Below are positions 1,908-36,610 of a DNA stretch of 64,000 bases, in pieces (the stretch's first letter is position 1; each line of letters begins with the position of its first letter). Both the position numbers and the translations under genes were made by a program. The stretch is taken from IMG/VR virus record IMGVR_UViG_3300046653_000093, positions 151,809-215,808 of that record; one strand, written 5' to 3'. The notes beneath the pieces were generated by a model. It was not told the DNA's origin, made no database searches, and saw nothing but the letters and a program-made list of their open reading frames with translations.

Positions 1908-2311
1908 TAACTAACCACCTTGCGCTTCTTGCGTTTTTTCTTCCCAACTTTATTGGACTCAAGAATTTGTTCACGAACCTTCTTGCTGGTTTCATCCAAA
2001 TTCGTGGCCTGCACATTTGGATTCTCCTGACGGATCATTCCTTGAGCCATTTCAAGATTGGAGAAAGATCCAATAAGAATAGCCTGGTTTCTTAGCTTCT
2101 GAGCCTCTAGCTCTTGATCATGAAGCCAACTTTCATATAACCATACCTTTAAATATGCGTTAATATCCTCATAGAAAGGATCATCTGGCAACTTATGAAA
2201 CAATTTCATTAGATATCTAATGAATTGATGCTCAGGTGTCCTGACCACTTTTGGAGATGGTTTCCGCCACCTCCTTCGCCTCTTCAACGGTCTTTGGAAT
2301 ATAACCGTCAT
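1907..2311 (-). CDS. Tail assembly chaperone, second (gpT-like) ORF; start uncertain, possibly reached by frameshift
   Basis: Lies between chaperone and tape measure and overlaps the end of the upstream gene in the +1 frame. Confidence 0.55.
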   Translation of the reverse strand: MTVIFQRPLKRRRRWRKPSPKVVRTPEHQFIRYLMKLFHKLPDDPFYEDINAYLKVWLYESWLHDQELEAQKLRNQAILIGSFSNLEMAQGMIRQENPNVQATNLDETSKKVREQILESNKVGKKKRKKRKVVS

Positions 2312-2891
2312 AGGTTTCTTGAGTTAAGGCTTCATAGTTGTTGAATAAATGGCTTATAAGCGCATGATCCATTTCATCAATCAGATCTTTACGAGCTAGT
2401 ACTTGCTCCTCATATGGAGAATTAGATGTACCAAGAATAATATCTATTGATTGATTATCTATCAAAAACAAAGAGTGCGACAGTGCTTCAACCCTAATTT
2501 TTGATAGGCTTGTTGGCGCGAATATCAATCGACCTTCCGAAGTTGTCAAACGCTCTGATTGTTCAACGACCTGAGCTAAGCAATTCTGCTCAAACGTCTT
2601 GAGCGTTCTCAAGCTGAAAACAACTGTGCCATTAGATGTGTCGATAGGAACATCTCTAGTCTTTCTCCCAAGTCCAGTAATAATATCTATACGACGCCTG
2701 GCATCACCAAGACTCTTATTATCAATCTGTTCCTGATGCTCCTGGGCCTGCCTGCGTAATGTGCTGGCTAGCTCTGGAGTCATCTGAGCTGGTGGCGGCA
2801 CTTGAGTTTCTTTGTCGTTTGAAACTACAAACCGCCTCTGTCCCGTTCCAGCGAAATTACTCTCACCAATTGTGCTGCTAATTCTACTCAT
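2232..2891 (-). CDS. Tail assembly chaperone (gpG-like)
   Basis: Position directly after tail tube; GGAG RBS; 219 aa. Confidence 0.6.
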   Translation of the reverse strand: MSRISSTIGESNFAGTGQRRFVVSNDKETQVPPPAQMTPELASTLRRQAQEHQEQIDNKSLGDARRRIDIITGLGRKTRDVPIDTSNGTVVFSLRTLKTFEQNCLAQVVEQSERLTTSEGRLIFAPTSLSKIRVEALSHSLFLIDNQSIDIILGTSNSPYEEQVLARKDLIDEMDHALISHLFNNYEALTQETYDGYIPKTVEEAKEVAETISKSGQDT

Positions 2892-2910
2892 AGATCACTC
2901 CTGTACAGCA

Positions 2911-2920
2911 CTATATATCA
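2911..2920 (-). promoter_or_regulatory. Second upstream motif TGATATATAG (representative copy)
   Basis: Related G(A/T)TATA(TA)G motifs lie upstream of iscS, portal, terminase, 52378 and 45398 genes. Confidence 0.4.
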
Positions 2921-2929
2921 GGAATTTGA

Positions 2930-3580
2930 TTATGGAAGGATGTTATCAACCACATTAATCAAACCTGCTGCATCAAGAGAGCCACGGCGCTTTCCAAGAT
3001 CTGTCTGCCTTTCAAATGCATCATTATCAATGATGGGAATCTGACGAGCATTTGGAGCAGGAACAACGTTCTGGCCTTGACCGAGATATGAATAAATATG
3101 CTCAGCTACCCAACCCATCGTTTCAGAAATAACATAATCAGAAACCTGATATGTAACTCCTAAGTTACGAATCCAAACATTCTTGATAACAGTGGTTATT
3201 ACGTTATCTGAGCCATTGAATCCATCAGCATCGCTTTCGTCTGCTGCAAAAATATCCAGAATGACAATATCAAAAGGAATACGCTGAGAAGCGGCATGAA
3301 TAAAGCCACGCGAAAATGCGGAAGCCATCCTCAAATTGTCGAATCTAACACGAGTGCAATCACCAGAAATATCAGTTGACTTCTGAGGAACTGAATCGAT
3401 GTGGCCATCAGTTCCGACCTCATCTATCATATGAATGTTTCGGTCTTCCTTGTAGGATATGCTCTGGATAGCGCCGATTGGATTACCATCGACTTGAATA
3501 ATGATCTCAGTTGAAACGCCCGTGCGGGTAACGTTACGACCTGCATCTGTAAGAATTGAACCAGTATGTGGATATACCAT
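2930..3580 (-). CDS. Tail tube protein
   Basis: Follows the sheath gene; beta-rich tube-like segments (IIIQVDGNPIGAIQSISYKEDR, TVIKNVWIRNLGVTY..DYVISE). Confidence 0.75.
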   Translation of the reverse strand: MVYPHTGSILTDAGRNVTRTGVSTEIIIQVDGNPIGAIQSISYKEDRNIHMIDEVGTDGHIDSVPQKSTDISGDCTRVRFDNLRMASAFSRGFIHAASQRIPFDIVILDIFAADESDADGFNGSDNVITTVIKNVWIRNLGVTYQVSDYVISETMGWVAEHIYSYLGQGQNVVPAPNARQIPIIDNDAFERQTDLGKRRGSLDAAGLINVVDNILP

Positions 3581-3594
3581 TTATCACCTTTAAT

Positions 3595-6060
3595 TTAGCT
3601 ATTAAGCTTACCAACGTTGATCAAAATATAAATCCAATTAGTTGGATATACTGGTTGAACAGCCACAGTAATATTCCACTGCCTTGGCTCTACTGAATCT
3701 CTATTTACAGTCAAACCTCCATAAGTAGTGATCAACCTCTGTTGAATGAAGGTTTGCATTAGAGACTGAGCAACAGCAAACAAAGTAGCTTTGAATGTTG
3801 GAGTCTCTGCTCGTCCAATGTATGGAGCGTAAGCTCTGCGCATAGAGAAGGAGATATAATCGCGAATAAATACAATGCTAATTTCCTCTTCAGTTGGCTC
3901 AAGAGAAGAAACTGTCGTCTTGCCCCAGATTACATTACCACCACCCTGGACAGGAGTAAGTACAGTAATTCCAGAGTTTACGATATTTTCTACAACCAAT
4001 GGAGAGAAAAGCTTGTTACGCAGAATACTAAATCCAACCAATCTCTTATTCGTAAGAGGTTCTTGAATTTGTGTATTACCAGAGAAATAACCTGCTACTG
4101 CCGCCGCAATAAAGAATCCGTCAATGAGAATGTTGTTTGCCCCAGCCTGAACGACAATCTGATCAGGATAGAAGTATACAACTCGGTACGAATCTCCAAA
4201 TGCATCTGGAACACTATAGTTAGCCAAATCCTCGGTATTTCCTACCAAAATATCCGCAACTGATGCGCCTTGAATACCTTCAAGAATACCGATGTCTTCA
4301 ACTGCTGCAGGTTTATTACCAATTACATTATCCGGCGTAAGGCCCTGAATAGCGCCTATGAACAAAAGCCTTTCATGTTTATTGCGGATGTCGCTCTGTG
4401 TCTCAACATGCACTTTTCCATTCTGGAAAATAGCACTAATCGTCTGGCTTGGTAGAGGCACAACCATATCGATATCGATTGCTTCCGCTGCTGTATAAGC
4501 TTCTAGCCATCCGGCATCATAAAAGTCAGCGTCCTTGGCATCTATTAAGGTGCAACGTAGCGACTGACCAAGGCTAAGTGCCATGTCTCTGGTCCAAAGG
4601 ATTCGAGCACTAGATAATGATGAATCAACAACTTCGAACTGAATACCATTCTCACTAACAAATGGGGTGGCACGCTTGATTTTTAGCTGATCTTGAACAA
4701 CTGCAACAATCTCAAATGTTCCATCGTTTCCATTTATAGAATCGAATATTACCACCGAGCGTGTAGCGGCAAGGTCTTCAAGGCCAAACGCAACGGTAGC
4801 ACTTGATAGCTGAGCATAATAACCATCTACCAAGTAGCCATCGCTTACCAAAACACCATCAGCTCCTTCTTTTTGTACCGAAGACTCTTCGACAACCGTA
4901 TAGGAATATGCAAAGTTATCCAAGAATGTAGCTGGATTTTCTGTGTAGAAAGGCTCCTTATTTGGAATAATTTGAGTCTCTAGCTTGGTAACTGGATCAG
5001 TTACAAAGAAATGAATATCGTTATCAGAATCTGGGGTAACATTCAAAGGAAGAATGAATGTAACATCATCAACATCATTGAAGCCATCGGCTGATTTAAC
5101 AAGATCATATGATAAGCGTCTTGGAACTGAAGGCTTGGCTTGAATTGTATAGATGCCAGGAGTTCCGTTTGCCCATGCTAATTGAGCACCCAACGATACT
5201 CTATTGGTAACCGATGGTTGTCCATGCTTTGCAATTACAGCATTCAAATCTGAGAAGAACTGTGGATCATTGAGTGATGCAAAAGAGATATAACGAGCAG
5301 TAAGATTATCTCCACTTACCAAAGTTCCGCTTTGAACTTCAACAACAAAGTTGTCTCCTTCAATGAACGGCGTAGCGCCTTCCGAGATTGAAAAACTCAA
5401 AACTCCATTAGAAATAAGTATTCCATTTGATTGCCAAGTGATTTGATTTCCGTAACCGTCTAGTAGAGTTCCGCTTACCGAACCACGAGCAATAAACTTT
5501 GCGTAACCATCGATTGGTTGTCCCATCGAATTTCGACGAACGCTTGAGCAACGAATCGTCCAAGTTTCTGGCGGGGCATTCACATCAACGAGCGTCAGAT
5601 TTGAGATAGTTCCATTTCCAGAATTGCTTCCAGCCGCCAAATAGAACGAGCCTCCCTGATCTACTAATGAAGCACCCTGCAACAAAATCTCTCCAGTTGT
5701 TGGGTCTACCTCGGCATCATATCCGGGGAAGTTCCCATCAATGGTATGTTCAAACACCTTAAGTGTGATACCATTCTTGAAAAGCAAAGATCTGTTTTGA
5801 ACAACTGGAGCTACGACAGTCTGCCCTTTCCCAAAAAGGAAGCGACGCCCATCAGAGCCTTTGGTTGTGGAATAAGTTGGGTCAAACCCATCGTTGCCCT
5901 TGCCATTAGCTGATCCAACAAGAACTTCTTCCGTTAAACCTTCACCAATAATAACTGGTATACGATTACCAACTGGTACGCTAACACCGGTCTGAATCGT
6001 TCTGGTTTCGGAATACGCACCAGGTACAACGCTAGAGGCTCCAGGTATGTCGGCTGCCAT
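3595..6060 (-). CDS. Contractile tail sheath protein
   Basis: N-terminal PGAYSET; sheath-type C-terminus (GITVLTP..VIWGKTT..EISIVFIRDYI..WNITVAVQPVYPTNWIYILINV); 821 aa. Confidence 0.88.
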   Translation of the reverse strand: MAADIPGASSVVPGAYSETRTIQTGVSVPVGNRIPVIIGEGLTEEVLVGSANGKGNDGFDPTYSTTKGSDGRRFLFGKGQTVVAPVVQNRSLLFKNGITLKVFEHTIDGNFPGYDAEVDPTTGEILLQGASLVDQGGSFYLAAGSNSGNGTISNLTLVDVNAPPETWTIRCSSVRRNSMGQPIDGYAKFIARGSVSGTLLDGYGNQITWQSNGILISNGVLSFSISEGATPFIEGDNFVVEVQSGTLVSGDNLTARYISFASLNDPQFFSDLNAVIAKHGQPSVTNRVSLGAQLAWANGTPGIYTIQAKPSVPRRLSYDLVKSADGFNDVDDVTFILPLNVTPDSDNDIHFFVTDPVTKLETQIIPNKEPFYTENPATFLDNFAYSYTVVEESSVQKEGADGVLVSDGYLVDGYYAQLSSATVAFGLEDLAATRSVVIFDSINGNDGTFEIVAVVQDQLKIKRATPFVSENGIQFEVVDSSLSSARILWTRDMALSLGQSLRCTLIDAKDADFYDAGWLEAYTAAEAIDIDMVVPLPSQTISAIFQNGKVHVETQSDIRNKHERLLFIGAIQGLTPDNVIGNKPAAVEDIGILEGIQGASVADILVGNTEDLANYSVPDAFGDSYRVVYFYPDQIVVQAGANNILIDGFFIAAAVAGYFSGNTQIQEPLTNKRLVGFSILRNKLFSPLVVENIVNSGITVLTPVQGGGNVIWGKTTVSSLEPTEEEISIVFIRDYISFSMRRAYAPYIGRAETPTFKATLFAVAQSLMQTFIQQRLITTYGGLTVNRDSVEPRQWNITVAVQPVYPTNWIYILINVGKLNS

Positions 6061-6746
6061 TAGACCACCTCATGAATAAGTTTGTTTGTTTTGTTGTTGA
6101 TACGCTTCATGCTAGCTCCCAAAATGATATTCTCTTTCGATCTGAGCGGTCTAAGATTCTCCAATCTCCATGCGTCTTTAAACCCAGGATCGGACTCGCA
6201 ACTATATACATGAGTAGCCATAGGTTTGATATGATCTAATTGCCAAGTCCAAGTATTTGAATCATTTTCGCCCCATGTTTTTGGATTGTAGTTGCCCCAA
6301 TTGTTCCAATTCATCCAAGGTTCGAATTTTGATTCTAAATGCAATTTCAATTCCTCAATAGAATACGGCAAAAATGCCAGAGTATCTATAATCTTAGCGA
6401 TGTTGCGGCTAGTGAGGGCATGCTTGATGCGCCTAGATACTCTTTTCTTCAACTTAATATGAACTTGATTTTCGTAATTTTCTCTATAAACCCTAACACG
6501 GTCTATATTTTTCATCTTCCAATTTTTCTTATAATCAGGATTTTCTTTGGTAAAATTTTTGGTTCTTTCTCTGGCCACGTCTGAGTTTTTTCTCTGAAAA
6601 TCGCGACACTCTTCTCTCTCACAATCTATACATTTATTTCTAAAGTAAAGTGGTACTTTGTTCCTGCTTAGGCATTGCCGAAAATTTTTAGATATCAAGT
6701 CCTTTTTGACGCCACATTTGACGCATATTCTAAGTATATTCTCCAT
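6060..6746 (-). CDS. Free-standing HNH homing endonuclease
   Basis: N-terminal CxxC pairs; LESKFEPWMNWNNWG..WQLDHIKP..LENLRPL..EN; paralog of 43916..44695. Confidence 0.8.
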   Translation of the reverse strand: MENILRICVKCGVKKDLISKNFRQCLSRNKVPLYFRNKCIDCEREECRDFQRKNSDVARERTKNFTKENPDYKKNWKMKNIDRVRVYRENYENQVHIKLKKRVSRRIKHALTSRNIAKIIDTLAFLPYSIEELKLHLESKFEPWMNWNNWGNYNPKTWGENDSNTWTWQLDHIKPMATHVYSCESDPGFKDAWRLENLRPLRSKENIILGASMKRINNKTNKLIHEVV

Positions 6747-6786: not shown

Positions 6787-7596
6787 TTACAAAGCCTCGA
6801 TTTGATCCAGAATCGATATGGACTCACTTATTGCAATATTGGGATTTGTAACGGTTTCAGATCCCCATGCCCTGAAATCTACGCAAAAATTGATACGCTC
6901 TACTATATTTTCTATTGGAATTAGGCGTCTCCACTCTGTACGAATATCCACGGTAATGGTTGCTTTGTAGAGTTTATCTTGTTGCCTATCTTCGCCTTCA
7001 GAAATTCCGCCAAGGGTTGGCTGCCCAGATTTCACTAACACACCGGCTTTTCTCAAACTATCAAATCTGATATCGGTAAAAAGCAGCATCACCATACTTA
7101 CCAAATTATCCCTATCTAAAATATCTCGGCTTATTACATCAATTGAAATTGTGCCTTCCCATGCACCGGCAAGGTCAATATATTTTGGAATGAAGAATTC
7201 TTTAGCATTACCGTAGCCATCAACTACGAGTTGCTTTTCATGTTCCACCACATCCCTATTTCTGTTTATTGAAATAGGAACGGATCTGGCCGAAATCATT
7301 TTTACCAGAAGAGCAGGGTAGAATATTGCATCGAACCTGAACGCCTCGCCGATGAAGATACGAGTGGTTTGTTCATCATTATTGAGTCCCGCCTCTAATG
7401 ACAGATCTGTATGATCAGGAACTTTTGGATAGCCCCACTCATCAGCTACATAATGAAACCAAGAATCCTTCGCAAACTCTTCCCGGAGCATCCCGATGAT
7501 GAGTTCCTTAGGATAGGCCATCAGGGTGTTTTGAACAACATGATGGATCTGGTTCAGGTCATGCCTTACAAAGCTTCCAGTTCCCGGGGTGGTCAT
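6787..7596 (-). CDS. Putative tail completion/terminator protein
   Basis: Located upstream of sheath; YPALLV and WEGTISIDVISRDILDRDNL pattern reminiscent of tail terminators. Confidence 0.5.
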   Translation of the reverse strand: MTTPGTGSFVRHDLNQIHHVVQNTLMAYPKELIIGMLREEFAKDSWFHYVADEWGYPKVPDHTDLSLEAGLNNDEQTTRIFIGEAFRFDAIFYPALLVKMISARSVPISINRNRDVVEHEKQLVVDGYGNAKEFFIPKYIDLAGAWEGTISIDVISRDILDRDNLVSMVMLLFTDIRFDSLRKAGVLVKSGQPTLGGISEGEDRQQDKLYKATITVDIRTEWRRLIPIENIVERINFCVDFRAWGSETVTNPNIAISESISILDQIEAL

Positions 7597-7629: not shown

Positions 7630-10600
7630 TTAGCCAAAGAATGGTCTTGGCCTATAAATTGTGATATTTGCCCACTTTGGATTTGATACATATACATTAC
7701 TTACAGTTATAAATCCAGTAGTTGTAGCCCCACCGACATATACATTGAGATCAAAAAAACCATCGGAAGCCATTACGTGATGTATTGGCATTATCACGGT
7801 ATACGTACCAGGAGTAAGTGGAGACATACTATATGTCTCCACTGGTACGGAATTTTCCGACGCAGCTGCGCTCAAAAACAAATCGCCACCTGATGGTACG
7901 AAAACCCTTAGATAAATTTCTGCAAAGATAGTATCGCCAGTCAAAAGACTTGTAGAATACTTAACATCATTTGATGATGTATCAGGTAGCGCTGTTGTTG
8001 GGATTGTTACCGGAGCCGTTGGGCTTTGATATGCAATTCTATTATTTCCAAAAGCTAAGCCATTGGTCGTAATTATATATTGGTCATCTATAACAAGATG
8101 ACTGAAAGCATTATCTCGCACCACGCTGTTTGGAGCATGAATCCAACCACCAAAACCAAGCGTGCCATTCTGATGCTCTAACGTATTTCCAACAACTACT
8201 GTAGGTTGCTCTGTTGCTATCGGGGGAGTAAAGAAATATATTCCCCAGCCATTTGTTGGAATATTCTTTATAACGTTACCAGTGATTGTGCCACCACAAC
8301 CCCAAATTGTTAGGTTGTAATCGAATCCATCAATCTGGTTTCCTGAGCATACAACAGAACCACCATCATTACTAGTAATAATTAGGCCAATTGGCGTAAA
8401 TGGATTTGGGGGGCCTGGAATCGGTATAAGCGACAAGAACATTCCTGTATAACCAAGAATGACAACATTTCCAGACACAACACTCTTGAATAATCCACTA
8501 CTAGAAGTAGCATCAGCCTTCAAGAAATATGCATGGTTGTTAGTTACAATATTCTCAACCGGGAACTCTGGTACATCTGTAACTCCAATGCCATATGTAT
8601 ATGGAGCCGCAAAGATATTTGCCGTTGCAGAAACGCCAGAATAAATAACCTCGGCTATATTATCCTGCACAAAGAATGATCCGCTCATAGCAACATTGAA
8701 TGGACTTCCCTGAACCATCCATCCTATGTATCCGAACCTGTTATTTCGAATGGATACATTAGAAACCAAAGCTCTGCTGCGTTGAAGATACTGTCCAGCA
8801 TTAAGGTTATCTGGAATCCATCTTGATGTGATAATCATTCCCTGTTGAGCATCAACAGTATTTCCTGATATTACAGTATCTATAAATAACTGACCATCAT
8901 TAGCTGGGTCTGTTTCTGTATTTATAAAAGCAAGTGCCAAAGCAGTAGTCGAATTACCAAGGCCAACTGGCGTGCCACCAACAACAACAGTTCCACTATC
9001 AGAAAACCTATTGTTTGTAAATTTTCCGTTAGCAAACTCAGACCCATTTCCATAAACAGCTATGAATGGAGGCCTTTTATTTGAATCTGCAAAGAAAACA
9101 CAATTATCCACTCCATAGTTATCAATGAATCCAAGATTGACCATATCTACCAATACAGCTCCCCAGTTTCCATCAGTGCCTGTCAGGCCAATCGCGCTGG
9201 TATTGAAGAACTCATCAGGATATGTAGTCGCATAGCTAGAAAATGAAGCATCACGGTGTGGATGGTAATTTATAGTAGCTTCTTCAATTCTCCAATTACC
9301 ACTCTTAAATGATAGCCCTTTGGCGCTATTTATCTCGTATGTTCCACCTTTAAGTGTAACAAAATTATTGAAGGCTAGTTGCATCTCGGAATTGATCGTT
9401 ACAGTTTTGACCTTTACCTCAGCAACTCCATATTCATTCACCCAGTTCACCAAAGCCTGTGGAGTAATAAAGTTGGCATTGTATCCGGCAACTTGTTCCG
9501 TTGATGCCCAGGTGAAAGAACCGATATCCTGGTTGATGACATGTCTACGGGCATCAGTCACCAACAATGAAGAGAAGCCACCAGGATCTCCAATAGTTAC
9601 CATGGCTTTAGCTATAATTGTAAGGTCTTTCCTAGTATCTACAATATTTCTAAATGACAGAGATTCCACAAAGTATAGGCTATTTACCTCAAAGAATTCT
9701 ACACCGGTATCTTTTACAATGGCTTTTAGCTGTCCCGTTTCAGTCACGCAAATGAAGAACTCAACAACGTTAGTGATAGAAGATCTAACTTCTGGCAGTT
9801 TTACTTCTAGAGAATCAACCGGAACAAATGCGCCATTTACAAGCGCCATACCACCATTAAAGGTTAGCACGGAATTTGTAGCATCTGAAAATCCAAACGT
9901 AAAGCCTCTAACAACACCATTGGTATGAAGATAACGCTCACCAGCCTCAATAAATTTGATAGCTGAATCTGTAAAGTTTTCCTCTGATAATGTACCAAAT
10001 TCTCTCAAATCTGTAACAGACATGAAAGCTTGATCATTGTGACTTACACCGGCTATAACGAAGTATTCCTCATTCTCTATTAGACTACCGAATAGCTCAA
10101 TGTACGTCCATCCCAAGGATGGTATCGTGGTACCAGGATCAGCAACATCGTCTCTAAACTCAATATCAATGAAATTAACAAAGGTAACATCATAAAGTCT
10201 AATTATGGAATTCTTCTTACCATTGACAACATTACCAATATTTGCGCCATTCAAATCGCTAAGGTATATAGTAAATTCACCAGTTGATGAGTTGTATCCA
10301 ATAACGTTAAGTGTAATGTAATTGCGGAAATTAGAGCCGCCATAACCCTTCAACTTTGGTGAGACTCTTCGAATATTCCATCCGGAAAGACCAGCAACTC
10401 CAGTGCCTCCAACACCACCAGATGCTGCACCTGGTATACCTGGCGTGTTAGTAATGCTATCACTCTTGGGAATTCTAGCGCGCTCAACAGAAACAGACTT
10501 ACCAAGGTTATTTATGAATACTTCATGATAGTGGTTGTATCCTAACGGATCGTCACCGACCATATTATTCAAATTGAAAAATACAGAATCATCTGAAAGA

Positions 10601-12705
10601 TAAATCTTAACAGGGCTAGGAATACTAGATAGTGTAGGATCCCCCGTTCCATGAACACCATTTATAACTGTAATGTCTGTTTCTCCAACACCACCACAAG
10701 TGAACGAAACACTATCAATAATAAATCTTCCATATGCTGTAATATCTGGATTAGTAGGATCTATAGGTTGAACCACAATGGTTCTTCCAGCATTCAACCC
10801 CTCAGTTGCCAGATCTAATGGAATGGTATATTTTACTGCGTTTGGATAACCAGTTACATTACTAGCTGTGGCAACCCAATATCCATCACCTTCGGTAAAT
10901 CTTGGCTTTGCCAAAGAGTCTCTACGATTTCCATTGACAAAAACATTACGCCCACTAACAGGCATAATGATTAGCGTTGAAAAGTTTGCTGCTGCATCAG
11001 CACTTGCAAAAGTACCAATATGGACCGGGGTTGCAAAACCAGCACGGTGTCCACCAAGGCCTAATGCGTCATTGCCATCAACCGCATCTCCTACAACATT
11101 TCTTACATATATTCCTGGCACCAGTGATAGTGGCGGGGCGTATTGGCCAGAAATAATGCTAAAGGCAGCTCCTCCAATAGAATCCGCCAGCATAACACCA
11201 AACTCACCCTTGTAATTGAATGCAATAAAACGATAATTGTATCCGGCCTTTCTGAATTGTTTATTTGTCTCCTCAACAATGATATCAAGATTATATTTAC
11301 CAGGAGTTGCTCCAGCATTTCCAGTAATATCGATAGGGGCCAAATTTACAAAAGAAGATGGATTTCCATTTGGATACAATCTAAGATACAACAAGTAATG
11401 AGTTGCATCTATCTTATTAGCATCAAAACCAATACCAATAGCTACAGCTCCGCGCGGACTTCCTAAAATAACACTATCAACACGAAGGTCTGAAGATATA
11501 CTGGTATCTGGGTGAGCACCGGCCGCTGCAACAACGCCCCAAGTATCAATATTGAAATTTGGGCGATCAATTCTAGCAGATCCAAAGTATCCGTCAGTCC
11601 CATCGGCTCTAAATAGATTTGTTGATGTGACTCTAACAGACCAAGAAGATCCTGGCACAAAATTAATGGACTTTATTGGAAGCATTGCCTCAACGCCAAA
11701 GCCGTAATTAATCCTAACAATATCTCCAACTTTTACATTTGTAAATATATTATCAAAAGAGAAGCTTGTATTTGTTGGGATGAATGTTATAACATCATCT
11801 CCGTTTCCTATGTTATCATTTGGAGCCAACTGACTAGGCTCTGCCAAATATGCCTGAACTTTTGTTACTGGCACAACATTTACTGTGTATCCATCAGACA
11901 TCAAGTCTTGAATTAGTGCCTTCCTAGAAATTCCATTTGAATTTAGAGTTGCCCGATCAACCCCAATAGATAGGGTTTCTTGATTATCAATGAAATCTAG
12001 AGCCTCTTGAACATTTTGTGTGGTTACTGGAAGCTGCACGAATGTAGAGGCATCCACAGAAATAGCAGCTGCTGTATGAGCTAGAGCTGTAGCATTTTCG
12101 TGCCCAACCAACTCATTATTTATCTCAAGCAATGCTTCGGCGACTTGCGTGGCTGGACGAAGATGATTGTTTCTATCTAATAAACCAGTCCACGAATAAG
12201 TATCCCTGGAATCAACATGCACTGCATTTATGTCAATATGGCTAGCAACATGTCTCGCTTTAGTCAAATTATCTACGAGAAGTACGCCACCAGAAATATG
12301 AATTAGCAAATTGCTGTTTTCTTCTGCTACAAGCTCTTGAACCAATGCAAGTTGAGACTCAGCCACTGTAATAGCCGAATGCAAATCTGTGGTGGAATAA
12401 CTCAGGGCAAGCTTTGTCTCTTGAATTCCGGCATTTGACCCAACTTGATTATCGCTAATTGGAAGAGTAGCCAAACCAATAGCTTGCAAAGCCTCTGCTC
12501 TAGCATTGCCATCAGGGCCAATTAGAACAGAAATACGATCATTCACGCTAGACTTCGATCCTTGCGGATTGATACCAAGCGTTTTCTCAATTGCAAAAAC
12601 GGCATCTCTAAGTTGATTGATAGCCTGAGTACCAAACTCAGAGAGATTGTCATCAATCCTCAAAATTGTCGTATCATTATCTAATGAATTTGGATATCTT
12701 ATCAT
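7630..12705 (-). CDS. Large virion protein (fibre/collar-like) with C-terminal beta-helix (pectin-lyase-like) repeats
   Basis: 1691 aa; N-terminal YPNSLD..AINQLRDAVFAIEKTLG anchor; repeated ISGN/ITGN/VVGN/VRDN in the C-terminal third. Confidence 0.6.
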   Translation of the reverse strand: MIRYPNSLDNDTTILRIDDNLSEFGTQAINQLRDAVFAIEKTLGINPQGSKSSVNDRISVLIGPDGNARAEALQAIGLATLPISDNQVGSNAGIQETKLALSYSTTDLHSAITVAESQLALVQELVAEENSNLLIHISGGVLLVDNLTKARHVASHIDINAVHVDSRDTYSWTGLLDRNNHLRPATQVAEALLEINNELVGHENATALAHTAAAISVDASTFVQLPVTTQNVQEALDFIDNQETLSIGVDRATLNSNGISRKALIQDLMSDGYTVNVVPVTKVQAYLAEPSQLAPNDNIGNGDDVITFIPTNTSFSFDNIFTNVKVGDIVRINYGFGVEAMLPIKSINFVPGSSWSVRVTSTNLFRADGTDGYFGSARIDRPNFNIDTWGVVAAAGAHPDTSISSDLRVDSVILGSPRGAVAIGIGFDANKIDATHYLLYLRLYPNGNPSSFVNLAPIDITGNAGATPGKYNLDIIVEETNKQFRKAGYNYRFIAFNYKGEFGVMLADSIGGAAFSIISGQYAPPLSLVPGIYVRNVVGDAVDGNDALGLGGHRAGFATPVHIGTFASADAAANFSTLIIMPVSGRNVFVNGNRRDSLAKPRFTEGDGYWVATASNVTGYPNAVKYTIPLDLATEGLNAGRTIVVQPIDPTNPDITAYGRFIIDSVSFTCGGVGETDITVINGVHGTGDPTLSSIPSPVKIYLSDDSVFFNLNNMVGDDPLGYNHYHEVFINNLGKSVSVERARIPKSDSITNTPGIPGAASGGVGGTGVAGLSGWNIRRVSPKLKGYGGSNFRNYITLNVIGYNSSTGEFTIYLSDLNGANIGNVVNGKKNSIIRLYDVTFVNFIDIEFRDDVADPGTTIPSLGWTYIELFGSLIENEEYFVIAGVSHNDQAFMSVTDLREFGTLSEENFTDSAIKFIEAGERYLHTNGVVRGFTFGFSDATNSVLTFNGGMALVNGAFVPVDSLEVKLPEVRSSITNVVEFFICVTETGQLKAIVKDTGVEFFEVNSLYFVESLSFRNIVDTRKDLTIIAKAMVTIGDPGGFSSLLVTDARRHVINQDIGSFTWASTEQVAGYNANFITPQALVNWVNEYGVAEVKVKTVTINSEMQLAFNNFVTLKGGTYEINSAKGLSFKSGNWRIEEATINYHPHRDASFSSYATTYPDEFFNTSAIGLTGTDGNWGAVLVDMVNLGFIDNYGVDNCVFFADSNKRPPFIAVYGNGSEFANGKFTNNRFSDSGTVVVGGTPVGLGNSTTALALAFINTETDPANDGQLFIDTVISGNTVDAQQGMIITSRWIPDNLNAGQYLQRSRALVSNVSIRNNRFGYIGWMVQGSPFNVAMSGSFFVQDNIAEVIYSGVSATANIFAAPYTYGIGVTDVPEFPVENIVTNNHAYFLKADATSSSGLFKSVVSGNVVILGYTGMFLSLIPIPGPPNPFTPIGLIITSNDGGSVVCSGNQIDGFDYNLTIWGCGGTITGNVIKNIPTNGWGIYFFTPPIATEQPTVVVGNTLEHQNGTLGFGGWIHAPNSVVRDNAFSHLVIDDQYIITTNGLAFGNNRIAYQSPTAPVTIPTTALPDTSSNDVKYSTSLLTGDTIFAEIYLRVFVPSGGDLFLSAAASENSVPVETYSMSPLTPGTYTVIMPIHHVMASDGFFDLNVYVGGATTTGFITVSNVYVSNPKWANITIYRPRPFFG

Positions 12706-18078: not shown

Positions 18079-18103
18079 AATAAAGTGCGGGAATATGCAG
18101 GGA

Positions 18104-24781: not shown

Positions 24782-24977
24782 TCGCCTTTGGTTGCTTTCG
24801 ATTATTCAAACCAACAGAGAATATGACCTCTTGACCTTTCTTCAAAGTCTTGAAACCTTCGGTGATAATGTCAGACCAATGTATAAATAAATCGGCTTCA
24901 TCTACTCTGGAGATAAATCCGTAACCAAGCTTGGCATCAAACCAAACAACCTTTCCAACATACTTTTCTTCTTGCAT
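24699..24977 (-). CDS. cspA: Cold-shock domain protein (CspA family)
   Basis: GKVVWFDAKLGYGFI (RNP1), DLFIHWSDI (RNP2), EGFKTLKKGQEV. Confidence 0.9.
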   Translation of the reverse strand: MQEEKYVGKVVWFDAKLGYGFISRVDEADLFIHWSDIITEGFKTLKKGQEVIFSVGLNNRKQPKAIEVSVVSEADSTTVCDCAIVSEDKVEK

Positions 24978-25942: not shown

Positions 25943-25943
25943 A

Positions 25944-29259: not shown

Positions 29260-29814
29260 TTAAGAAACAACTTCCACATGTGCGTGCCAGTCAATAGTAC
29301 CAGATAAGCCTGTAACTATGATAACTATATTGGGCCCACTTACCGAATCGGAAACAGATAAATTTGGATCTTCTATATAATCAGGACTTGGCACTAAATC
29401 TTGCAATATTGCAGGAGATCCTGCTCCAATACGTTTGGCAGTAAACTCCCTAACAAACTTACCAATAACAACGCCAGAGCTGCGTATTGCAATAATAGTT
29501 GCCCGAACCGATATAGATCCACCAATAGAAATCGTATGACTATAGAGTGTTGTTGGTACTGAATTGGTTGTTGTAATAGATACAAAATCTTCATCTGGTG
29601 ATGATAAAAATTGAGTATCATCACCCCATTGAACGCTATCTTGACCGTCTATGACATGGAGACCATCAGCTGTTCCAAAAGTACCAGAAGGAGCCGCTGT
29701 GTATCTACCATATCCGTCAATCCAAGCTATAAAACCTGCTTGAACAGCCGTTTGCAAAGCTAATAAATCAAGATTAGCCAAATGAAAGCTTTGCTTAATA
29801 TATAGTTCTGTCAT
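29260..29814 (-). CDS. Fibre-associated protein
   Basis: C-terminal domain (TTTNSVPT..IIAIRSSG..KRIGAG..IDWHA) similar to C-terminus of 27620..29248; start refined to MTELYIK. Confidence 0.5.
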   Translation of the reverse strand: MTELYIKQSFHLANLDLLALQTAVQAGFIAWIDGYGRYTAAPSGTFGTADGLHVIDGQDSVQWGDDTQFLSSPDEDFVSITTTNSVPTTLYSHTISIGGSISVRATIIAIRSSGVVIGKFVREFTAKRIGAGSPAILQDLVPSPDYIEDPNLSVSDSVSGPNIVIIVTGLSGTIDWHAHVEVVS

Positions 29815-29852
29815 ATCTACAACATGCATAAATATTAGGTATACAATTATAA

Positions 29853-31211
<1,359 letters not shown>

Positions 31212-31580
31212 TTACGTTCCTATATGCCAAATATGAACGTCTACAGTACCAATACCAGCAAAATATATCTCATTCTCTCCTCTTGGTCCAAAGTCAAGAG
31301 TTTGCCCAGAGCTAATACGCCCATGGATATTGTAACCAGAGAAAGAATATATTACGTCTGTTCCGCTAACACCAACCAACATTATTCTACGAGCCCCGCG
31401 AAAAGCTGTACGAACTTGAGGTGTTATTGGGAAAAGCGGATAGTAACCGTCATAGCCATCATAAGGTGTTCCTATCGGCGCAACATATCCATCACCCCAT
31501 GTACCACTTGTTACAGATGTGTTTGTACTTACGACCTTAAAAAAATTGTAATCCTTTCCTGTATTAACTGGCTTGCCCAT
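31212..31580 (-). CDS. Small virion protein (3 DGY motifs)
   Basis: GAGG RBS before MGKPVN; beta-rich. Confidence 0.55.
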   Translation of the reverse strand: MGKPVNTGKDYNFFKVVSTNTSVTSGTWGDGYVAPIGTPYDGYDGYYPLFPITPQVRTAFRGARRIMLVGVSGTDVIYSFSGYNIHGRISSGQTLDFGPRGENEIYFAGIGTVDVHIWHIGT

Positions 31581-31662
31581 TATAACCTCAAATACATACA
31601 AAAATATACCATTGAGCCTTCTAAAACTTAAATATCAAGCTAGAACATCCATATCTATTATA

Positions 31663-32445
31663 TCATGGCAAGCTCTGCCAAATTATATAGACAGTTACAG
31701 CTCCAGTTGTCGGAGAATTAGTTTCTGTTACATTTGCGAATATCGCCTGAGATGCTGGGTATATCGCTTCAAATCCAGTTGACTGAGACATATCACTGCC
31801 TAATGATGTTAGCGCAAATCCGCCAACAATAGATCCTACCGCTACAGATGGTATTATTGTTTGAGAAACAACTATTTGCTGCCCACCAGAAGTGGAGCCT
31901 ATACTAATCGCTGAGCTAGGACTACCGCCACCAGTAATTGCTGTCTTCACTCTCAAATCAATTGATATCAATTTCCATCGACCGGAACCAGATGGACTAG
32001 AAGTCCTAGTATCAATAAGAGTATTGGCAGTAGTTGTAAGATCAATATCAAAAGAAACAGCTATATATGGAGATGGAGCCGCTTGACCAAGACGAGTATC
32101 TATTCTTGCAATATGTTCGCCAATATATCCGTCTATCGGAGGTGCATAGTTAACTGGTAAATATGATAGCTCTATAAAGTATCCATCAACAGGATCACTT
32201 CCACCAGCCTCATGGGTGCTTGCGTGTGTTGCTGGTGTTCTTGAATTTACATAACCTATCGTCGCATAACCATCGATAGCTAAAAGAATTTCATTATCCA
32301 CAGCCTCTACCATTTCCAGGGCGGCTGAATACCCATCCAATACAGCTCCTAGGCCATCAAGTTTAACCTTATCTGCGGCTGACATTTCTCCATTAGCTAA
32401 TTGAGAAGAAAGAAGACTTGGATCTTTGTAATTTATTGTACCCAT
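31663..32445 (-). CDS. Fibre/adaptor protein
   Basis: GEMSAADKVKLDG fibre motif; HASTHEAGGSDP module shared with the collagen fibre; start refined to MGTINY (GAGG RBS). Confidence 0.6.
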   Translation of the reverse strand: MGTINYKDPSLLSSQLANGEMSAADKVKLDGLGAVLDGYSAALEMVEAVDNEILLAIDGYATIGYVNSRTPATHASTHEAGGSDPVDGYFIELSYLPVNYAPPIDGYIGEHIARIDTRLGQAAPSPYIAVSFDIDLTTTANTLIDTRTSSPSGSGRWKLISIDLRVKTAITGGGSPSSAISIGSTSGGQQIVVSQTIIPSVAVGSIVGGFALTSLGSDMSQSTGFEAIYPASQAIFANVTETNSPTTGAVTVYIIWQSLP

Positions 32446-32516
32446 AAAACCCCTCGCACATGCTGGCGTAGCCGCTGGTTTATCAACAACATACAAAAAT
32501 ATCCGTTGCGCTTCAT

Positions 32517-34684
32517 TTATTGAGCATAGATGCTGTATACATCATTATTTCCTGATTCAGCCACAAGCGATACAGCATTGAGTCCAGTAAGTGATAGGTT
32601 TGAAATTACGAAGGAAGCTCCATTGCCTGTATATGACAAGGTGTTATCAGCTGTAGCCATCCAGATTGTGGCTACATTTGTGGCCATATCTGGTGCAAGC
32701 ATGACACAATCTACAGAACCATCAGCATTAACCGTTGCATAGCCTGAAGCCCCACCAACAACTGTACCTAAGGCACCGGTGATCAGGTTGAAGTTGGCAA
32801 ATCCAGAGCCTCCACCTACTGCTAAAGCCACCCAATTTCTACCGGTTGGCTTGATACGCACTCGGAAGACAACTGGTCCTCTCACATAACCTGGTATTGT
32901 ACCAACCACAGTAGATATATCATGACCGCCAGTGCTATTATCCTCTACCAGTGTTGTGTTGTTCCAAGAAGCGACTCCTGCATCAATAAGGAATGAAAGA
33001 GTGCCTGTCACAGCCATTGTGCTTGCTACAAGCGAATAGCTTGGTATTCCATGAGCCGAGCCACCAGGAGCCGTTCTCGCCAAAGATACAGAGCTATTAG
33101 GGGTAGTCCAAGGCGCTGGAAAGAATACTGGCGTTGTTCCGTTTAGCGTGACCGAACCACTATTAGTGTAGCGGAACTGTGTTCCCGCCGGATTTGGTGG
33201 CGTTACTAAATTAACTTTACCGTATGTAACAATATTTCCTGAACCTATAGAGTTAATATTTTCAGGCACAGCTAACTGTCCTCTAACGTTTCTGATGTCT
33301 AAACTGTGGCCCGACACTCCAGTAGTAACCAAGGTAGTTGAACTATCCACAATTAATGCATCGACAATATTATCTTTGCTGATACAAGCATCACCATAGA
33401 TGATACCTGCTGAGATTCCGGACACAAGCAACTTCCCAAAGTGGTTTCTGTTGCACCCAAGAGTTCCATTTGCACCCAAGACTACGAGCGCTGTAACTAG
33501 ACCTGGAGTTTGTGCACTCGCATTCAAGTCTGAGATATCATTATCACAGAAATCAGAGCCAGTCCAAAACACGCCTGCAGTACCAATTACATTGACAGCC
33601 TTGAGTCCGCGAATCGTATTTCGATGGCACCCACACTCATCTGCTGGGATATCAATATTGATCGAAGTTGCGATAAATGGTCCACAGCAGTTCTCACCAG
33701 TGGCCCCATCAATAGTTGAATCCCAAGTAGTATTTAACCATACCGTGTATCCAATATTCTCACTCTTGACATTGCGAACAACAGCACCACGTTGCCCTTC
33801 GATAGCAAACCCAGAACGATTCGAATCAGTGCCATCCAACCCTATCGTAATAACATTATCAACCAAGTTATCTCTACCACTAATATCAAAGCCAACTAGT
33901 GAGGTACTGGATGTTCCTGCTGTTTGCTGGATAATTCCAGGACCAATTACTGAGCATCTCCAAACAGAGATCAACTCAATGAATCGATTGTCCGCATAGG
34001 AACCATCAAAAGCACATAAAATTTTGGCATTATTCAACTTTACATTGAAATTGATTACTGGTGAATATTTATAAATGTTACTTGCAGGTATGGAGAACAA
34101 TACAGGGGCATCCAAATTGACAGTTGTGCCAACAACCGATATTGCCTGAAACGAGACCCGTGCACCTTTGTTCGTACTGATCCAAAAATAATCTCCAGCT
34201 ACCAATGGTGTACCAGACCATGTAACTGTGAGACTATTAACTCTAGCCGCAGTAGCTCCAATAGATCCTATTGTGGCGGGAGTTCCTGGGTTGGCTACAA
34301 TCGGGCAAGTTCCAAGACCAAAAGTAGTAGTTGTAATTATCGTATTTCCATTAAGATCTAGCGTAATATTAGAACGATATTTCCATTAAGATCTAGCGTA
34401 ATATTAGAACGAGCAGCGATAATGGTGTGATTACAAATATAAGGAAGTGTAGATTTTCTCAACTTTACGGTAGATCCATAAGGTGCCGCTTGTACAATTG
34501 TATTGATTGCAGACCAGTCATCTGTTGTCGAACCATCAATTGGAGGCCCAGCCCAAACGATTACGGAATCATTTCTAGAAACATAACCATCTGATATGTT
34601 ATTAAGCTTGATGCTATCTTCCGCTTGAAAGAAACCAAAAGATTCTTCCTTCACATGTCCCGGGAATTTCTGGAATTTAGACAA
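32517..34684 (-). pseudogene. Tailspike/fibre gene (beta-helix) split by a 35-bp tandem duplication
   Basis: Removing one repeat copy fuses ORFs 34358..34684 and 32517..34205 into a single 710-aa frame (..RSNITLDLNGNTIITTTTFGLG..PLVAGDYFW..); DGSTTDDWSAIN tailspike-like motif. Confidence 0.8.
34343..34412. repeat. Perfect 35-bp tandem duplication (frameshifting)
   Basis: tatttccattaagatctagcgtaatattagaacga x2. Confidence 0.95.
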
Positions 34685-34730: not shown

Positions 34731-34743
34731 ATGCAAAAATATT
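34731..34743 (-). promoter_or_regulatory. Putative late promoter element AATA-N5-GCAT (representative copy)
   Basis: TA-N5-GCAT found upstream of at least 12 gene starts; see findings. Confidence 0.6.
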
Positions 34744-34751
34744 CGTTGCAT

Positions 34752-34782
34752 AAACAAAAAGCCCCGGTTTGCACCGAGGCTC
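34752..34782 (-). terminator. Rho-independent terminator after major capsid gene
   Basis: Minus strand GCCTCGGT-GCAA-ACCGGGGC followed by TTTTTGTTT. Confidence 0.85.
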
Positions 34783-34813
34783 TCTGTATTCATTTTGAAC
34801 TAACTAGCTAGCA

Positions 34814-35815
34814 TTATCCGACGATTGTTGACTTGCGAGAAGCAGCAACGGCGCGTGGGTTCACGATACCGATACCAATCTCTTCCGACACAACCCATCC
34901 TAGTTTTAACTGTTTTGGTTCATCAGCTGGGATAACTTCGATGTCCTGACGGATTGGAAGCACACCAACGAACTCTGGGTCAGAGGCACCGTAGACTGTT
35001 CCTGGTGGAACGATCTTCGAAACCATAATGTCAGCGCCCCAGATGTGAGCATACAGACCTGTCTGAAGAATCTCACGCTGCGTAACTGGATCAATTTCAC
35101 CAGCCGAGGTTCCGGAAGATGCCCAGTTAAGGATGTCCGTAAACTCATTGATGTTCATGAAGTACTTCGTTGTTACAAGGTCCCAACGATCAATCTGAAC
35201 CTTGATCTCAACCAAGTCTCTCTTCAACAGACCGCTGTCTGTGATGTCCTGCAACGTGTTTTCAACACTCGATGCTGCGTCGATAGCCGCAAAGATGTTT
35301 GCATCTTCTTGAGCCATCAATTCTTGACGGGCCTTTTGAACGGCACGGTCAATAACGTTGAATCGACGACGACGAACCTCAGAGATACGAACTGTTGGGT
35401 TCGAATAAAGCTCGAACGTTGGCACAACGATACGATCACCGAACACACGAGACTCACCACCGGTACCATTGCTGGAAATGACGGTAGCTGCTACGTCAAT
35501 ATCACGCTCATACTTCGGGTCAACGCCTTGTGGAAGAGGATCAACCACCAACAGACGACGGGCAATTCCCTGATAATCCAAGTTACGACGAATTGGGTTC
35601 GCCATAGCCTGAGCAAGAGCAAGCTTTCCTTCCTGTGTCATAATCGCACGAGCAATAAGCTCATCGCGCTTTTCGTCATTCAAACCTGGTTGGCCCGAAA
35701 GAGCCATATTTGAAGGCTGGCCCTCTTCGAGGATCGCAGCGTACTTAACTAGCGTATTCAATGCATCCTTTACGGATGTGGCATTCATACCACCACGGGT
35801 ATCAAATAAAGACAT
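34814..35815 (-). CDS. Major capsid protein (HK97 fold)
   Basis: 333 aa from MSLFDTRGG with AGGAG RBS; LAQAMANPIRRNLDYQGIARR, IDRAVQKARQELMAQED, GWVVSEEIGIGIVNPRAVA; followed by terminator. Confidence 0.85.
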   Translation of the reverse strand: MSLFDTRGGMNATSVKDALNTLVKYAAILEEGQPSNMALSGQPGLNDEKRDELIARAIMTQEGKLALAQAMANPIRRNLDYQGIARRLLVVDPLPQGVDPKYERDIDVAATVISSNGTGGESRVFGDRIVVPTFELYSNPTVRISEVRRRRFNVIDRAVQKARQELMAQEDANIFAAIDAASSVENTLQDITDSGLLKRDLVEIKVQIDRWDLVTTKYFMNINEFTDILNWASSGTSAGEIDPVTQREILQTGLYAHIWGADIMVSKIVPPGTVYGASDPEFVGVLPIRQDIEVIPADEPKQLKLGWVVSEEIGIGIVNPRAVAASRKSTIVG

Positions 35816-35874
35816 ATATAATCTCCTAATGTTTGTTTGTAAGCTGCCAAAATCCATCAACAGCTAGCGGAAGA

Positions 35875-35895
35875 GGAGGGGAATTCCACCCCTCC
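35875..35895. promoter_or_regulatory. Intergenic stem-loop upstream of the capsid gene
   Basis: ggagggg-aattcca-cccctcc inverted repeat without a U-tract. Confidence 0.45.
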
Positions 35896-35914
35896 AAATC
35901 CATATATCGATCAA

Positions 35915-36610
35915 TTATGTAAGCGGAGGCGAGAAGTAGAACAGAGCACGGAATGCTCCACCACTTGGGTTCAGGATTGTTCCTGATGGGCTCAAGGCAG
36001 CCGTTACCAATGTGACCGGGGTTGTTACCAAGCTTCCACCCTTATAAGATTCGAAGTTCAAGAACCTTCCGACAATTGCATAACCATCAGAGTCAAAGTT
36101 CACCGAAGCGTTAGGTGTCAACAGACCAGCAGCCGTTGCGTACAACGGAGCACCAATCTTGAGGCTTGAGTTAGTTGGTACCAAGCCCGTGAGGACCGTG
36201 GTGTCAACTGCATCCAAAGTCACAGCGTATGTACCTGGCTTGTCCCACAGAGTGACCTTGCCAGAAGCGTATGCCGTGTGTGGGCCCAAGTTAACTGCTG
36301 GAGCCTGCAGACCATATGAATACTGTCCGGCGATTCCACCAATTAATGAACCAAACAAAGTTCCATATCCAAAGATACCTTCGTCAACCAACATAAGAGG
36401 ACGATCACCAGGAACCAAAACCGTAGTAACAACTGGTCGAGATGTTCCTACGTATCCGTCCTGATTCACATCAGCAGCTGCTTTATCAGCAGTGCGTGAT
36501 ACACCCTTAATCGTCGCGACTTCTCCACCCTTTAGGGTGATATAGATACCATCTGCGCCGTCAAATTGTCCTAGCGGTTGAATGCCAGGCTGAACAAGTT
36601 CTAATGCCAT
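35915..36610 (-). CDS. Capsid decoration/cement-like protein
   Basis: Directly upstream of MCP; VTLWDKPGTY..LKIGAPLYATAAGLLT similar to the 44703 and 43512 paralogs. Confidence 0.6.
   Translation of the reverse strand: MALELVQPGIQPLGQFDGADGIYITLKGGEVATIKGVSRTADKAAADVNQDGYVGTSRPVVTTVLVPGDRPLMLVDEGIFGYGTLFGSLIGGIAGQYSYGLQAPAVNLGPHTAYASGKVTLWDKPGTYAVTLDAVDTTVLTGLVPTNSSLKIGAPLYATAAGLLTPNASVNFDSDGYAIVGRFLNFESYKGGSLVTTPVTLVTAALSPSGTILNPSGGAFRALFYFSPPLT

Follow-up and report, generated by a model that had tools for sequence, protein, structure and literature searches.

Why should one tripeptide, Asp-Gly-Tyr (DGY), recur through the tail, fibre and decoration-type genes of a phage? The question is raised by a stretch of 64,000 nucleotides from IMG/VR virus record IMGVR_UViG_3300046653_000093 (positions 151,809 to 215,808), called the window below, which represents 64 kb of the 392-kb genome of an uncultured jumbo phage. 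No near cultured phage was found: the best GenBank phage matches align with at most a third of the sheath protein, at 27-29% identity. An initial annotation, made from the letters of the window alone, had counted 45 DGY in 13 predicted outer virion proteins and had proposed a virion-wide system of tyrosine modification or binding. Our analysis indicates that the DGY excess is a conserved, recurrently gained and clade-specific property of outer virion proteins which is selected at the peptide level, and among the explanations we favour, at about even confidence, a structural joint.

By a simple call of open reading frames (ORFs), made gene by gene, 45 in-frame DGY are spread over 13 minus-strand ORFs between positions 2232 and 36610, which reproduces the earlier count. 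The minus strand carries every gene of the window, and some ORF starts are uncertain. The carriers, referred to below by their first coordinate, are:

2232-2891, minus strand: possible tail assembly chaperone, acidic and helix-rich, downstream of the tube gene; DGY at residue 195 (nucleotides 2301-2309).
3595-6060, minus strand: tail sheath; DGY at residues 184, 201, 407 and 412 (nucleotides 5503-5511, 5452-5460, 4834-4842 and 4819-4827).
6787-7596, minus strand: conserved tail gene upstream of the sheath; DGY at residue 126 (nucleotides 7213-7221) in the context VV-DGY-GN.
7630-12705, minus strand: tail protein of 1,691 residues, baseplate or fibre class, no family match; DGY at residues 271, 371 and 607 (nucleotides 11887-11895, 11587-11595 and 10879-10887).
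15383-17476, minus strand: 697-residue protein with a copy of the sheath insertion domain; DGY at residues 27, 230, 270, 287, 329, 346 and 349.
19780-23283, minus strand: 1,167-residue fibre with a SASA/SGNH-type acetylesterase domain; DGY at residues 25, 91, 97, 158, 166, 508 and 1007.
23295-24200, minus strand: 301-residue protein with the densest DGY cluster; DGY at residues 32, 39, 47, 55, 60, 63, 108, 133 and 208.
29260-29901, minus strand: 213-residue ORF; DGY at residue 62 (WI-DGY-GR).
29853-31202, minus strand: collagen-repeat tail fibre (Pfam Collagen and PHROG tail-fibre families); DGY at residues 16 and 36.
31212-31601, minus strand: 129-residue ORF; DGY at residues 37, 48 and 51.
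31663-32496, minus strand: tail fibre with the anchor MGTINYKDPSLL..KLDG; shaft DGY at residues 54, 75, 104 and 122, C-terminal domain at residues ~150-277.
34358-34684, minus strand: 108-residue N-terminal fragment of a fibre or tailspike; DGY at residue 32 (IS-DGY-VS).
35915-36610, minus strand: beta-rich conserved protein adjoining the gene of the major head protein (MCP); DGY at residues 51 (nucleotides 36452-36460) and 175.

The sheath was identified by PHROG 2839 and Pfam Phage_sheath_1, which match residues 617-813 only, and its model matches many solved sheaths in Foldseek. The 19780 fibre has a Pfam SASA match (E 3e-7) and a weak, below-cutoff match to the lectin-type family Laminin_G_3, while the 2232 protein matched nothing in Pfam or PHROG. 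The 31663 protein probably starts 17 residues later than called, at the conserved MGTINYK. A plus-strand ORF (31224-31631) overlaps the 31212-31601 ORF, for which the minus-strand frame was preferred because all neighbouring genes are on that strand. The fibre or tailspike to which 34358-34684 belongs seems to be split, the 108-residue piece with the fibre anchor motif being followed, after a gap of 152 nucleotides and in another frame, by 32517-34205 (562 residues); the two pieces were treated separately.

Composition predicts 2.15 DGY in the 11,272 amino acids of the left region of the window, which makes the observed number a 21-fold excess (z = 29) and places DGY first of all 8,000 tripeptides by over-representation. 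When each protein was shuffled 5,000 times, DGY occurred 2.2 times on average and never more than 11 times; under a first-order Markov model 8.4 would be expected. In the same region DGY takes up 45 of the 107 DG and 45 of the 82 GY dipeptides; its near variants are ordinary (NGY 3, DGF 8, DGW 3), and the five permutations of the three residues occur 1-6 times each. The tandem DGYDGY is found in the 15383 (residues 346/349), 23295 (60/63) and 31212 (48/51) proteins. No DGY was found in the called ORFs right of 36.7 kb (8,873 amino acids of head, packaging and other proteins; 1.25 expected), nor in the MCP, the tube, the IscS-like protein or the homing endonucleases of the window. The earlier statements that composition predicts few hits, that three proteins carry the tandem form and that the proteins just named and the right part of the window are free of DGY thus all hold, the excess withstands the shuffled and Markov backgrounds, and DGY is limited to the tail, fibre and decoration-type proteins of the window.

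In frame 0, the left genes contain the nucleotide pattern GAYGGNTAY 44 times (the remaining DGY site falls in an ORF overlap); it is present 5 times in the other frames and absent from the plus strand, and codon usage within DGY equals that outside it. Because DGY belongs to frame 0 only and its codon usage is ordinary, selection must act on the peptide, as had been proposed, and a DNA-level motif or repeat is ruled out. In an extended sequence logo the flanks show only weak preferences, and the tripeptide itself is therefore the unit; the residue preceding it is hydrophobic at 60% of sites against a background of 34%.

The sites are far more conserved than the residues flanking them. In the 35915 family, probably head decoration proteins, DGY51 is present in 61 of 63 homologues, with D51 and G52 invariant and Y53 kept in at least 90%. 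Residue 126 of the 6787 protein is DGY in 40/50 homologues, down to 30% identity, and the three sites of the 7630 protein (271, 371 and 607) are DGY in 28/29, 17/29 and 23/29. Sheath columns 184 and 201 have DGY in 27/40 and 30/40 homologues, while sites 407 and 412 lie within a lineage-specific insertion (4/40). The site of the 2232 protein, where DGY-IPK leads into a helix-like stretch, is DGY in 14/32 homologues, site 346 of the 15383 protein in 6/6, and seven of the nine sites of the 23295 protein are retained in the sole homologue found (62% identical). Judged from these alignments, the conservation (D51/G52 invariant, 28/29, 40/50) resembles what is seen at structural core positions. At most one DGY is found in the tube (64 sequences), the MCP (64) and several families of the head side or elsewhere.

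New sites have also arisen repeatedly. The 7630 family has a mean of 5.9 DGY per protein, distributed over 43 distinct alignment columns, many of them in insertions. When gain was scored in columns where no more than 10% of sequences have the tripeptide and which lie over 15 columns away from every conserved DGY, DGY was present at 42 columns and its permutations at 12.6 on average (a 3.3-fold difference), and neither NGY (11) nor DGF (20, relative expectation 1.32) was enriched. Homologues that lack DGY have D, N, S or T at the Asp position in 74% of cases and an aromatic or aliphatic residue at the Tyr position in 72%, by which DGY looks like a sharpened form of an older turn with a hydrophobic anchor. 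Since such homologues keep both features, an older turn and anchor would fit better than a free, exposed tyrosine. The exchange of N for D or F for Y that a generic turn should tolerate is not seen in the window counts given above (NGY, DGF), and as these variants are not interchangeable with DGY the motif is more specific than a generic turn.

Relatives in IMG/VR number 172 by sheath and 215 by MCP, many on contigs of 100-480 kb. At the sheath-flanking loci of about 150 related contigs DGY is in 5-20-fold excess, and in the non-redundant proteins of the related loci (334,000 amino acids) it is the top tripeptide, with 495 occurrences against 55.7 expected. Around the MCP gene, the fibre side holds 290 DGY where 22.8 are expected and the head side 109, at least 61 of which fall on one conserved site of the MCP-adjacent protein (63 distinct homologues). 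The farthest syntenic sheath relatives (37-44% identity; L036, L044, L046, L048, L055 and L056) are DGY-poor, and this holds alike for their sheath, their 6787 homologue, which has none, and their large tail proteins. The tail and fibre proteins of T4 (11.5 thousand amino acids) have 5 DGY where 2.3 are expected, and the tail proteins of phage G have 2 where 1.7 are expected; neither shows such an excess, which rules out a general property of contractile tails. Because the syntenic outgroup, T4 and phage G are all without the excess, the trait is derived and clade-specific. Every ingroup locus is DGY-rich, and counts in different families are not correlated over the ingroup loci; ingroup versus outgroup is therefore the sole contrast, pointing to a single evolutionary event. 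One relative, L166 (JAIXLO010000160.1, 383 kb; MCP 80% identical), is binned with a Chitinophagales (Bacteroidota) metagenome-assembled genome, a weak hint at the host phylum. This inference of a host was set aside, as one mis-binned contig is too weak for use.

What DGY might do is suggested most directly by the fibre shafts. In L088, a relative with an MCP 98% identical to that of the window, two fibres carry 12 and 15 DGY as shaft punctuation in the pattern ..AL-DGY-A[ST]...ETNRA..AE..I..AL-DGY-ATKAYV-DGY-.., with about 24 helix-like residues between one AL-DGY and the next and, further along, -DGY-SGGGGS-DGY. The 31663 fibre has the same layout after its conserved anchor, and in an alignment of shaft-type fibres (A4) the DGYs are the sole invariant shaft columns. 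Eight proteins share the GTINYK anchor and together contain 52 DGY in 2,589 amino acids; in fibres of this type 23 of 42 DGY-DGY spacings are multiples of 9, and a spacing of 27 equals 6 modulo 7. DGY-ATI.YV occurs in window gene 31663 and in P0002, P0030, P0031 and P0033. A search of 5.8 billion proteins returned 33 relatives of the 31663 protein, all sharing its C-terminal domain. All 33 DGY among them are in the six that have the clade anchor and shaft, and the 27 with other N-termini have none; by these sequences DGY appears to track the shaft and not the receptor-binding domain. In the 29853 fibre, the two DGY belong to an N-terminal H..H..GG.D.L-DGY module, and the motif H..GG.D.[ILV] continues as DGY in 7 of the 13 clade proteins carrying it.

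The C-terminal domain of the 31663 protein (window 31663-32112; P0004-P0029) is of interest in its own right, as 27 other metagenomic proteins combine it with N-terminal anchors of entirely different kinds, which clearly shows that phage groups have shuffled receptor-binding domains among themselves.

The shaft sites match the sequence pattern of beta-layers. In a beta-layer, three residues of each chain exit the helix and cross in a plane while the chains rotate by 120 degrees; it originates when 2 or 6 residues are inserted into heptads, giving nonads or hexads (Hartmann et al. 2016, eLife; PMC4786415). Such layers occur almost only in homotrimers, mostly of phages, have been proposed to raise the resilience of fibres, and have the published consensus [aliphatic]-A-T-K-[polar]-[DE] (PMC4786415). 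In HylP1, a tail fibre of a Streptococcus pyogenes prophage (2C3F), the register abc/layer/e reads I-D-G/L-A-T/K and the neck reads AAT-KAYVD; Tcar0761 of Thermosinus has the nonads IAN-MAT-KDD, and T4 fibritin (1AA0) ends in A-G-YIP, listed as an unusual beta-layer (PMC4786415). The clade reads L-D-G/Y-A-T/K where HylP1 reads I-D-G/L-A-T/K, so that D and G, at positions b and c before the layer in HylP1, would take the same positions in the clade, and the 7-mer ATKAYVD is identical, as is the string (I/L)-D-G-x-A-T-K. Alike are also the phage-fibre context, the presumed junction between coiled-coil segments and, for those spacings that are multiples of 9, the periodicity. Unlike the published layers, in which the preceding residues are variable, the first layer residue of the clade is almost always Tyr after Asp-Gly; moreover, the tripeptide of the clade is found in non-fibre proteins as well, and its trimer is one that we infer from sequence. 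In T4 fibritin, too, a coiled coil ends in Gly and then Tyr, the Tyr opening the layer, comparable to DGY-IPK in the 2232 protein, but this is a single occurrence without Asp and not proteome-wide. The match to the pattern is limited to fibre shaft sites. Neither the 31663 protein nor an L088 fibre matched a PDB sequence, and Pfam gave nothing informative on the L088 fibres.

For the globular carriers, AlphaFold2 monomer models of the sheath and the 35915 protein were used. In the sheath model (predicted local distance difference test, pLDDT, of 79, and about 90 in the relevant domain) sites 184 and 201 lie in loops, 412 at the turn of a long hairpin, and 407 at the end of a strand on the opposite side; in this model the tyrosines of 407 and 412 should be cross-strand neighbours near the hairpin tip. 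All four sites are N-terminal to the region matching sheath families, and the presumed inserted domains that hold them would, going by what is known of sheath architecture, face outward. In the 35915 model (pLDDT 73) DGY51 follows a helix (46-50) and precedes a strand (57-62), while site 175 is in coil by a strand. Of the six modelled sites, five thus lie in coil segments that immediately precede a strand or follow a helix, and the sixth (407) ends a strand. Foldseek found nothing significant for the 35915 model in the PDB; the best match in a viral library was Gp26 of phage G, a weak one (E 4.7e-3). The MCP-adjacent gene of phage G (Gp26) has been described as a capsid decoration protein (phage G preprint).

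These models bear on the proposal of the initial annotation that DGY is a sequon placed in exposed loops of unrelated folds. The sites were expected in turns, and in both models they are indeed in or next to turns and loops, although a hydrophobic anchor fits better than a free tyrosine. As for the unrelated folds, several carrier families are unrelated to each other, but the fibre shafts and one sheath domain are shared modules. Sheath residues 142-277 resemble residues 233-374 of the 15383 protein (41% identity, E 1e-23), by which the two proteins may display the same surface module; the N-terminus of the 19780 fibre resembles that of 34358, and residues 2-69 of the 29853 fibre resemble residues 70-137 of 31663.

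We therefore propose, with roughly equal expectation of being right and of being wrong, that DGY is a clade-specific structural joint of outer virion proteins, which serves as a beta-layer junction in fibres and as a tight turn with a Tyr anchor elsewhere. In the presumably trimeric shafts, Asp-Gly would be the final two residues of a coiled-coil segment, at heptad positions b and c or f and g, and Tyr the first residue of a three-residue beta-layer, in which the three chains would cross in a plane and rotate by 120 degrees before the next coiled-coil segment restarts at position e. With a joint at every ninth residue (VDG-YAT-KAY nonads) or at intervals of about three heptads, the chains would be interleaved, and as each shaft module would start and end at the same type of joint, modules could be copied or exchanged while keeping the register. 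In the globular domains of outer proteins (sheath insertions, 6787 and decoration-like proteins) these residues would form a tight turn, with Asp capping, Gly left-handed and Tyr anchoring the following strand. The trimeric state, the register and the orientation of the tyrosine are read from the sequence pattern and would follow from this joint.

Several observations weigh against the joint. Spacings of 29 and 21 (the latter in window gene 31663, residues 54 to 75) are off a simple beta-layer register. A joint is not obviously needed where two DGY (407/412) share one protruding sheath hairpin tip, nor in the low-complexity D/G/Y/P runs beside His runs (23295, 15383, 31212), and the 12717, 27620 and 32517 ORFs, which lie in the tail and fibre region without family assignment, have no DGY at all. 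Generic turn or cap propensities do not account for the specificity of the motif. At 12 conserved DGY columns DGF does not occur, and Phe appears only where Asp-Gly is also lost, whereas F accounts for 53% of the replacements at control Tyr columns; a joint does not explain why Asp and the Tyr hydroxyl should be strictly needed. DGY is also found jointly in unrelated non-fibre proteins of one clade (the sheath, 6787, 7630 and the decoration-like protein), and since this clade-wide occurrence is lacking in the outgroup, T4 and phage G, a shared trans-acting cause is suggested.

Such a cause would be supplied if DGY were a virion-surface recognition code which arose once at the base of the clade and is read by a trans-acting factor, be it an enzyme that modifies Tyr, a chaperone or shared partner that docks on it, or a metal or glycan held by Asp/Tyr pairs; beta-layers and turns would then merely be the places where the code leaves the fold intact. 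We consider this rather unlikely, the argument for a recognition or sequon function being solely the unusual specificity of the motif. As a docking code, which seems to us a little less probable still, DGY would form a binding micro-site with the Asp carboxylate and the Tyr phenol held on one face by Gly; the ligand could be a metal ion located on three-fold axes, a polysaccharide from the envelope or matrix of the host, or a virion partner or chaperone that the carriers share, and the whole outer tail would become multivalently sticky or be recognised in assembly. The strict requirement for carboxylate and hydroxyl (no enrichment of DGF or NGY), the clustered and tandem sites with spacings of 3-9 common, the pair on the lineage-specific sheath hairpin tip, and the clade-wide presence in unrelated outer proteins with none in the outgroup would all suit it, and HxH iron sites on the axes of T4-type fibres offer a precedent. 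It is in line with metal binding that His runs come after DGYDGY in two proteins, 15383 (RHHH) and 23295, where the cluster occupies a stretch rich in D, G, Y and P and where His6 and a segment rich in Cys and His come next, and that the IscS-like gene is close by. However, His-rich windows lie near 9 of 859 DGY, against 6.5 expected, and in two families only, so a general association with His or metal was rejected. Furthermore, the third residue is hydrophobic in homologues without DGY, suggesting partial burial, the exposed MCP is without DGY in 64 sequences, and no partner or ligand can be identified from sequence. A covalent modification of the tyrosine (O-glycosylation, phosphorylation, nucleotidylation, hydroxylation or cross-linking), with DGY as sequon and the writer encoded elsewhere in the 392-kb genome or by the host, would suit a compact and highly specific motif that is recurrently gained, emerged jointly in one clade, is confined to outer virion proteins and seems unable to dispense with the Tyr hydroxyl. 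Tyr O-glycosylation does exist in Gram-positive S-layers (PMC2943079), and a Y_phosphatase2-type gene is found at 52411-53511. This phosphatase is, however, of eraser type and located in the head module, and because it was found in four close relatives only it was rejected as a partner of DGY; among about 60 ORFs of the window searched with Pfam or PHROGs (64 kb of 392 kb) no glycosyltransferase, kinase, Fic, oxidase or sulfotransferase domain was found. Many sites are near-invariant and core-like, the fibre sites are at a chain-crossing junction, virions assemble in the cytoplasm whereas the known Tyr and Bacteroidota O-glycosylation systems act on exported proteins, and no sequon is known to have this form. 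The modification proposed by the initial annotation finds no positive support, the fibre sites corresponding to a known structural element, and we regard it as quite improbable. Its statement that no DGY sequon is known agrees with the literature searched, in which no DGY motif has been described for phage tails.

Least probable of all, and in our view very improbable, is that the excess is a historical by-product of module duplication and shuffling and of low-complexity expansion, with no selection on the tripeptide. Carriers do share modules, the fibre shafts clearly grow by tandem duplication of DGY-bounded units, and the D/G/Y/P-rich stretch of the 23295 protein is of low complexity. Yet the paralogy that we detected explains few of the 45 sites and leaves the single conserved sites of the unrelated families 6787, 7630, 2232 and 35915; in lineage-specific columns well away from the conserved sites DGY arises 3.3 times as often as its permutations, its codons vary as the background does, and it is conserved well above its flanking residues. 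Pure paralogy was therefore rejected as the main cause, given the few sites covered, the unrelated conserved families and the recurrent gain.

Other short motifs of surface proteins may be compared with DGY. HxH metal-binding repeats occur along the long tail fibres of T4-type phages (the 'Ferrojan horse' literature); they too are very short motifs repeated on phage fibres, and two DGY clusters abut His runs, but the ligand set differs and the adjacency of His to DGY is not general. In Bacteroidota, O-glycosylation follows the motif D-(S/T)-(A/I/L/V/M/T). This motif, like the glycosylation of S-layer Tyr (PMC2943079), resembles DGY as far as an Asp-first motif of three residues is spread over many surface proteins; acceptor and motif differ, the targets are exported, no transferase was found in the window, and many DGY sites look structural. 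The YxD motif of trimeric autotransporter adhesin stalks is a periodic Tyr/Asp punctuation which stabilises a particular supercoil (PMC2373917, PMC6555100). It is likewise a short Tyr/Asp motif in the repeats of a trimeric fibre and gives a precedent for a structural clamp made of Tyr and Asp, whereas Y-x-D sits in helical pentadecads and D-G-Y at helix ends and turns, the adhesins are bacterial, and there is no homology.

The DGY enrichment is likely among the strongest tripeptide signals in a phage proteome and defines a large clade of uncultured jumbo phages; being clade-wide, conserved and recurrently gained, it is stronger than first noted. On the reading with most support, it would be a strict D-G-Y variant of the beta-layer or turn joint which is spread over the whole outer virion. 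If the structural joint is real, the fibres would consist of DGY-bounded modules that include nonad alpha/beta coiled coils, a type with very few solved structures; DGY would be a simple marker for module boundaries and for the annotation of outer virion proteins in metagenomic jumbo phages, and would suggest a design rule for swappable fibre modules. If instead DGY is a code, it would represent a novel type of sequon or binding motif, centred on tyrosine and extending over the virion, with a bearing on the decoration or stabilisation of tails in large phages.

The window also contains the following genes:

6060-6746 and 43916-44731, minus strand: weak HNH-like paralogues, 33% identical.
14556-15368, minus strand: homing endonuclease, LAGLIDADG.
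17491-18138, minus strand: 215-residue ORF of the tail module with a weak, below-cutoff match (E 1e-3) to the core domain of extracellular contractile injection systems (eCIS).
24699-24977, minus strand: cold-shock-domain protein in the tail module (E 2e-19).
25944-27032, minus strand: class-V aminotransferase or cysteine-desulfurase-like protein within the tail-fibre module (Pfam Aminotran_5, E 4e-28).
34814-35860, minus strand: MCP.
48114-51575, minus strand: ORF with a prohead-protease domain.
52411-53511, minus strand: 366-residue protein with a tyrosine/dual-specificity phosphatase domain (Y_phosphatase2, E 2.5e-14, above the Pfam cutoff).
56818-58728, minus strand: portal.
58758-60626, minus strand: large terminase.
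63248-63991, minus strand: PolyA_pol/CCA-adding-type nucleotidyltransferase beyond the terminase (E 2e-10).

The six homologues of the 17491-18138 protein have no DGY. Because the phosphatase gene lies in the head module, between protease and portal, its product is more likely an internal or ejected virion protein; the four relatives that have it compare with the 172 found by sheath and the 215 by MCP. The aminotransferase gene is 1.7 kb from that of the 23295 protein with its His6 run and dense Cys/His cluster, and it is conceivable that the phage encodes a supply of sulfur or metal clusters to a virion protein. Genes of homing-endonuclease type are interspersed among the structural genes. 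In L166 (L166:10001-10414) the single-piece match to the MCP covers residues 109-246 only, and the MCP gene of this relative may be interrupted.

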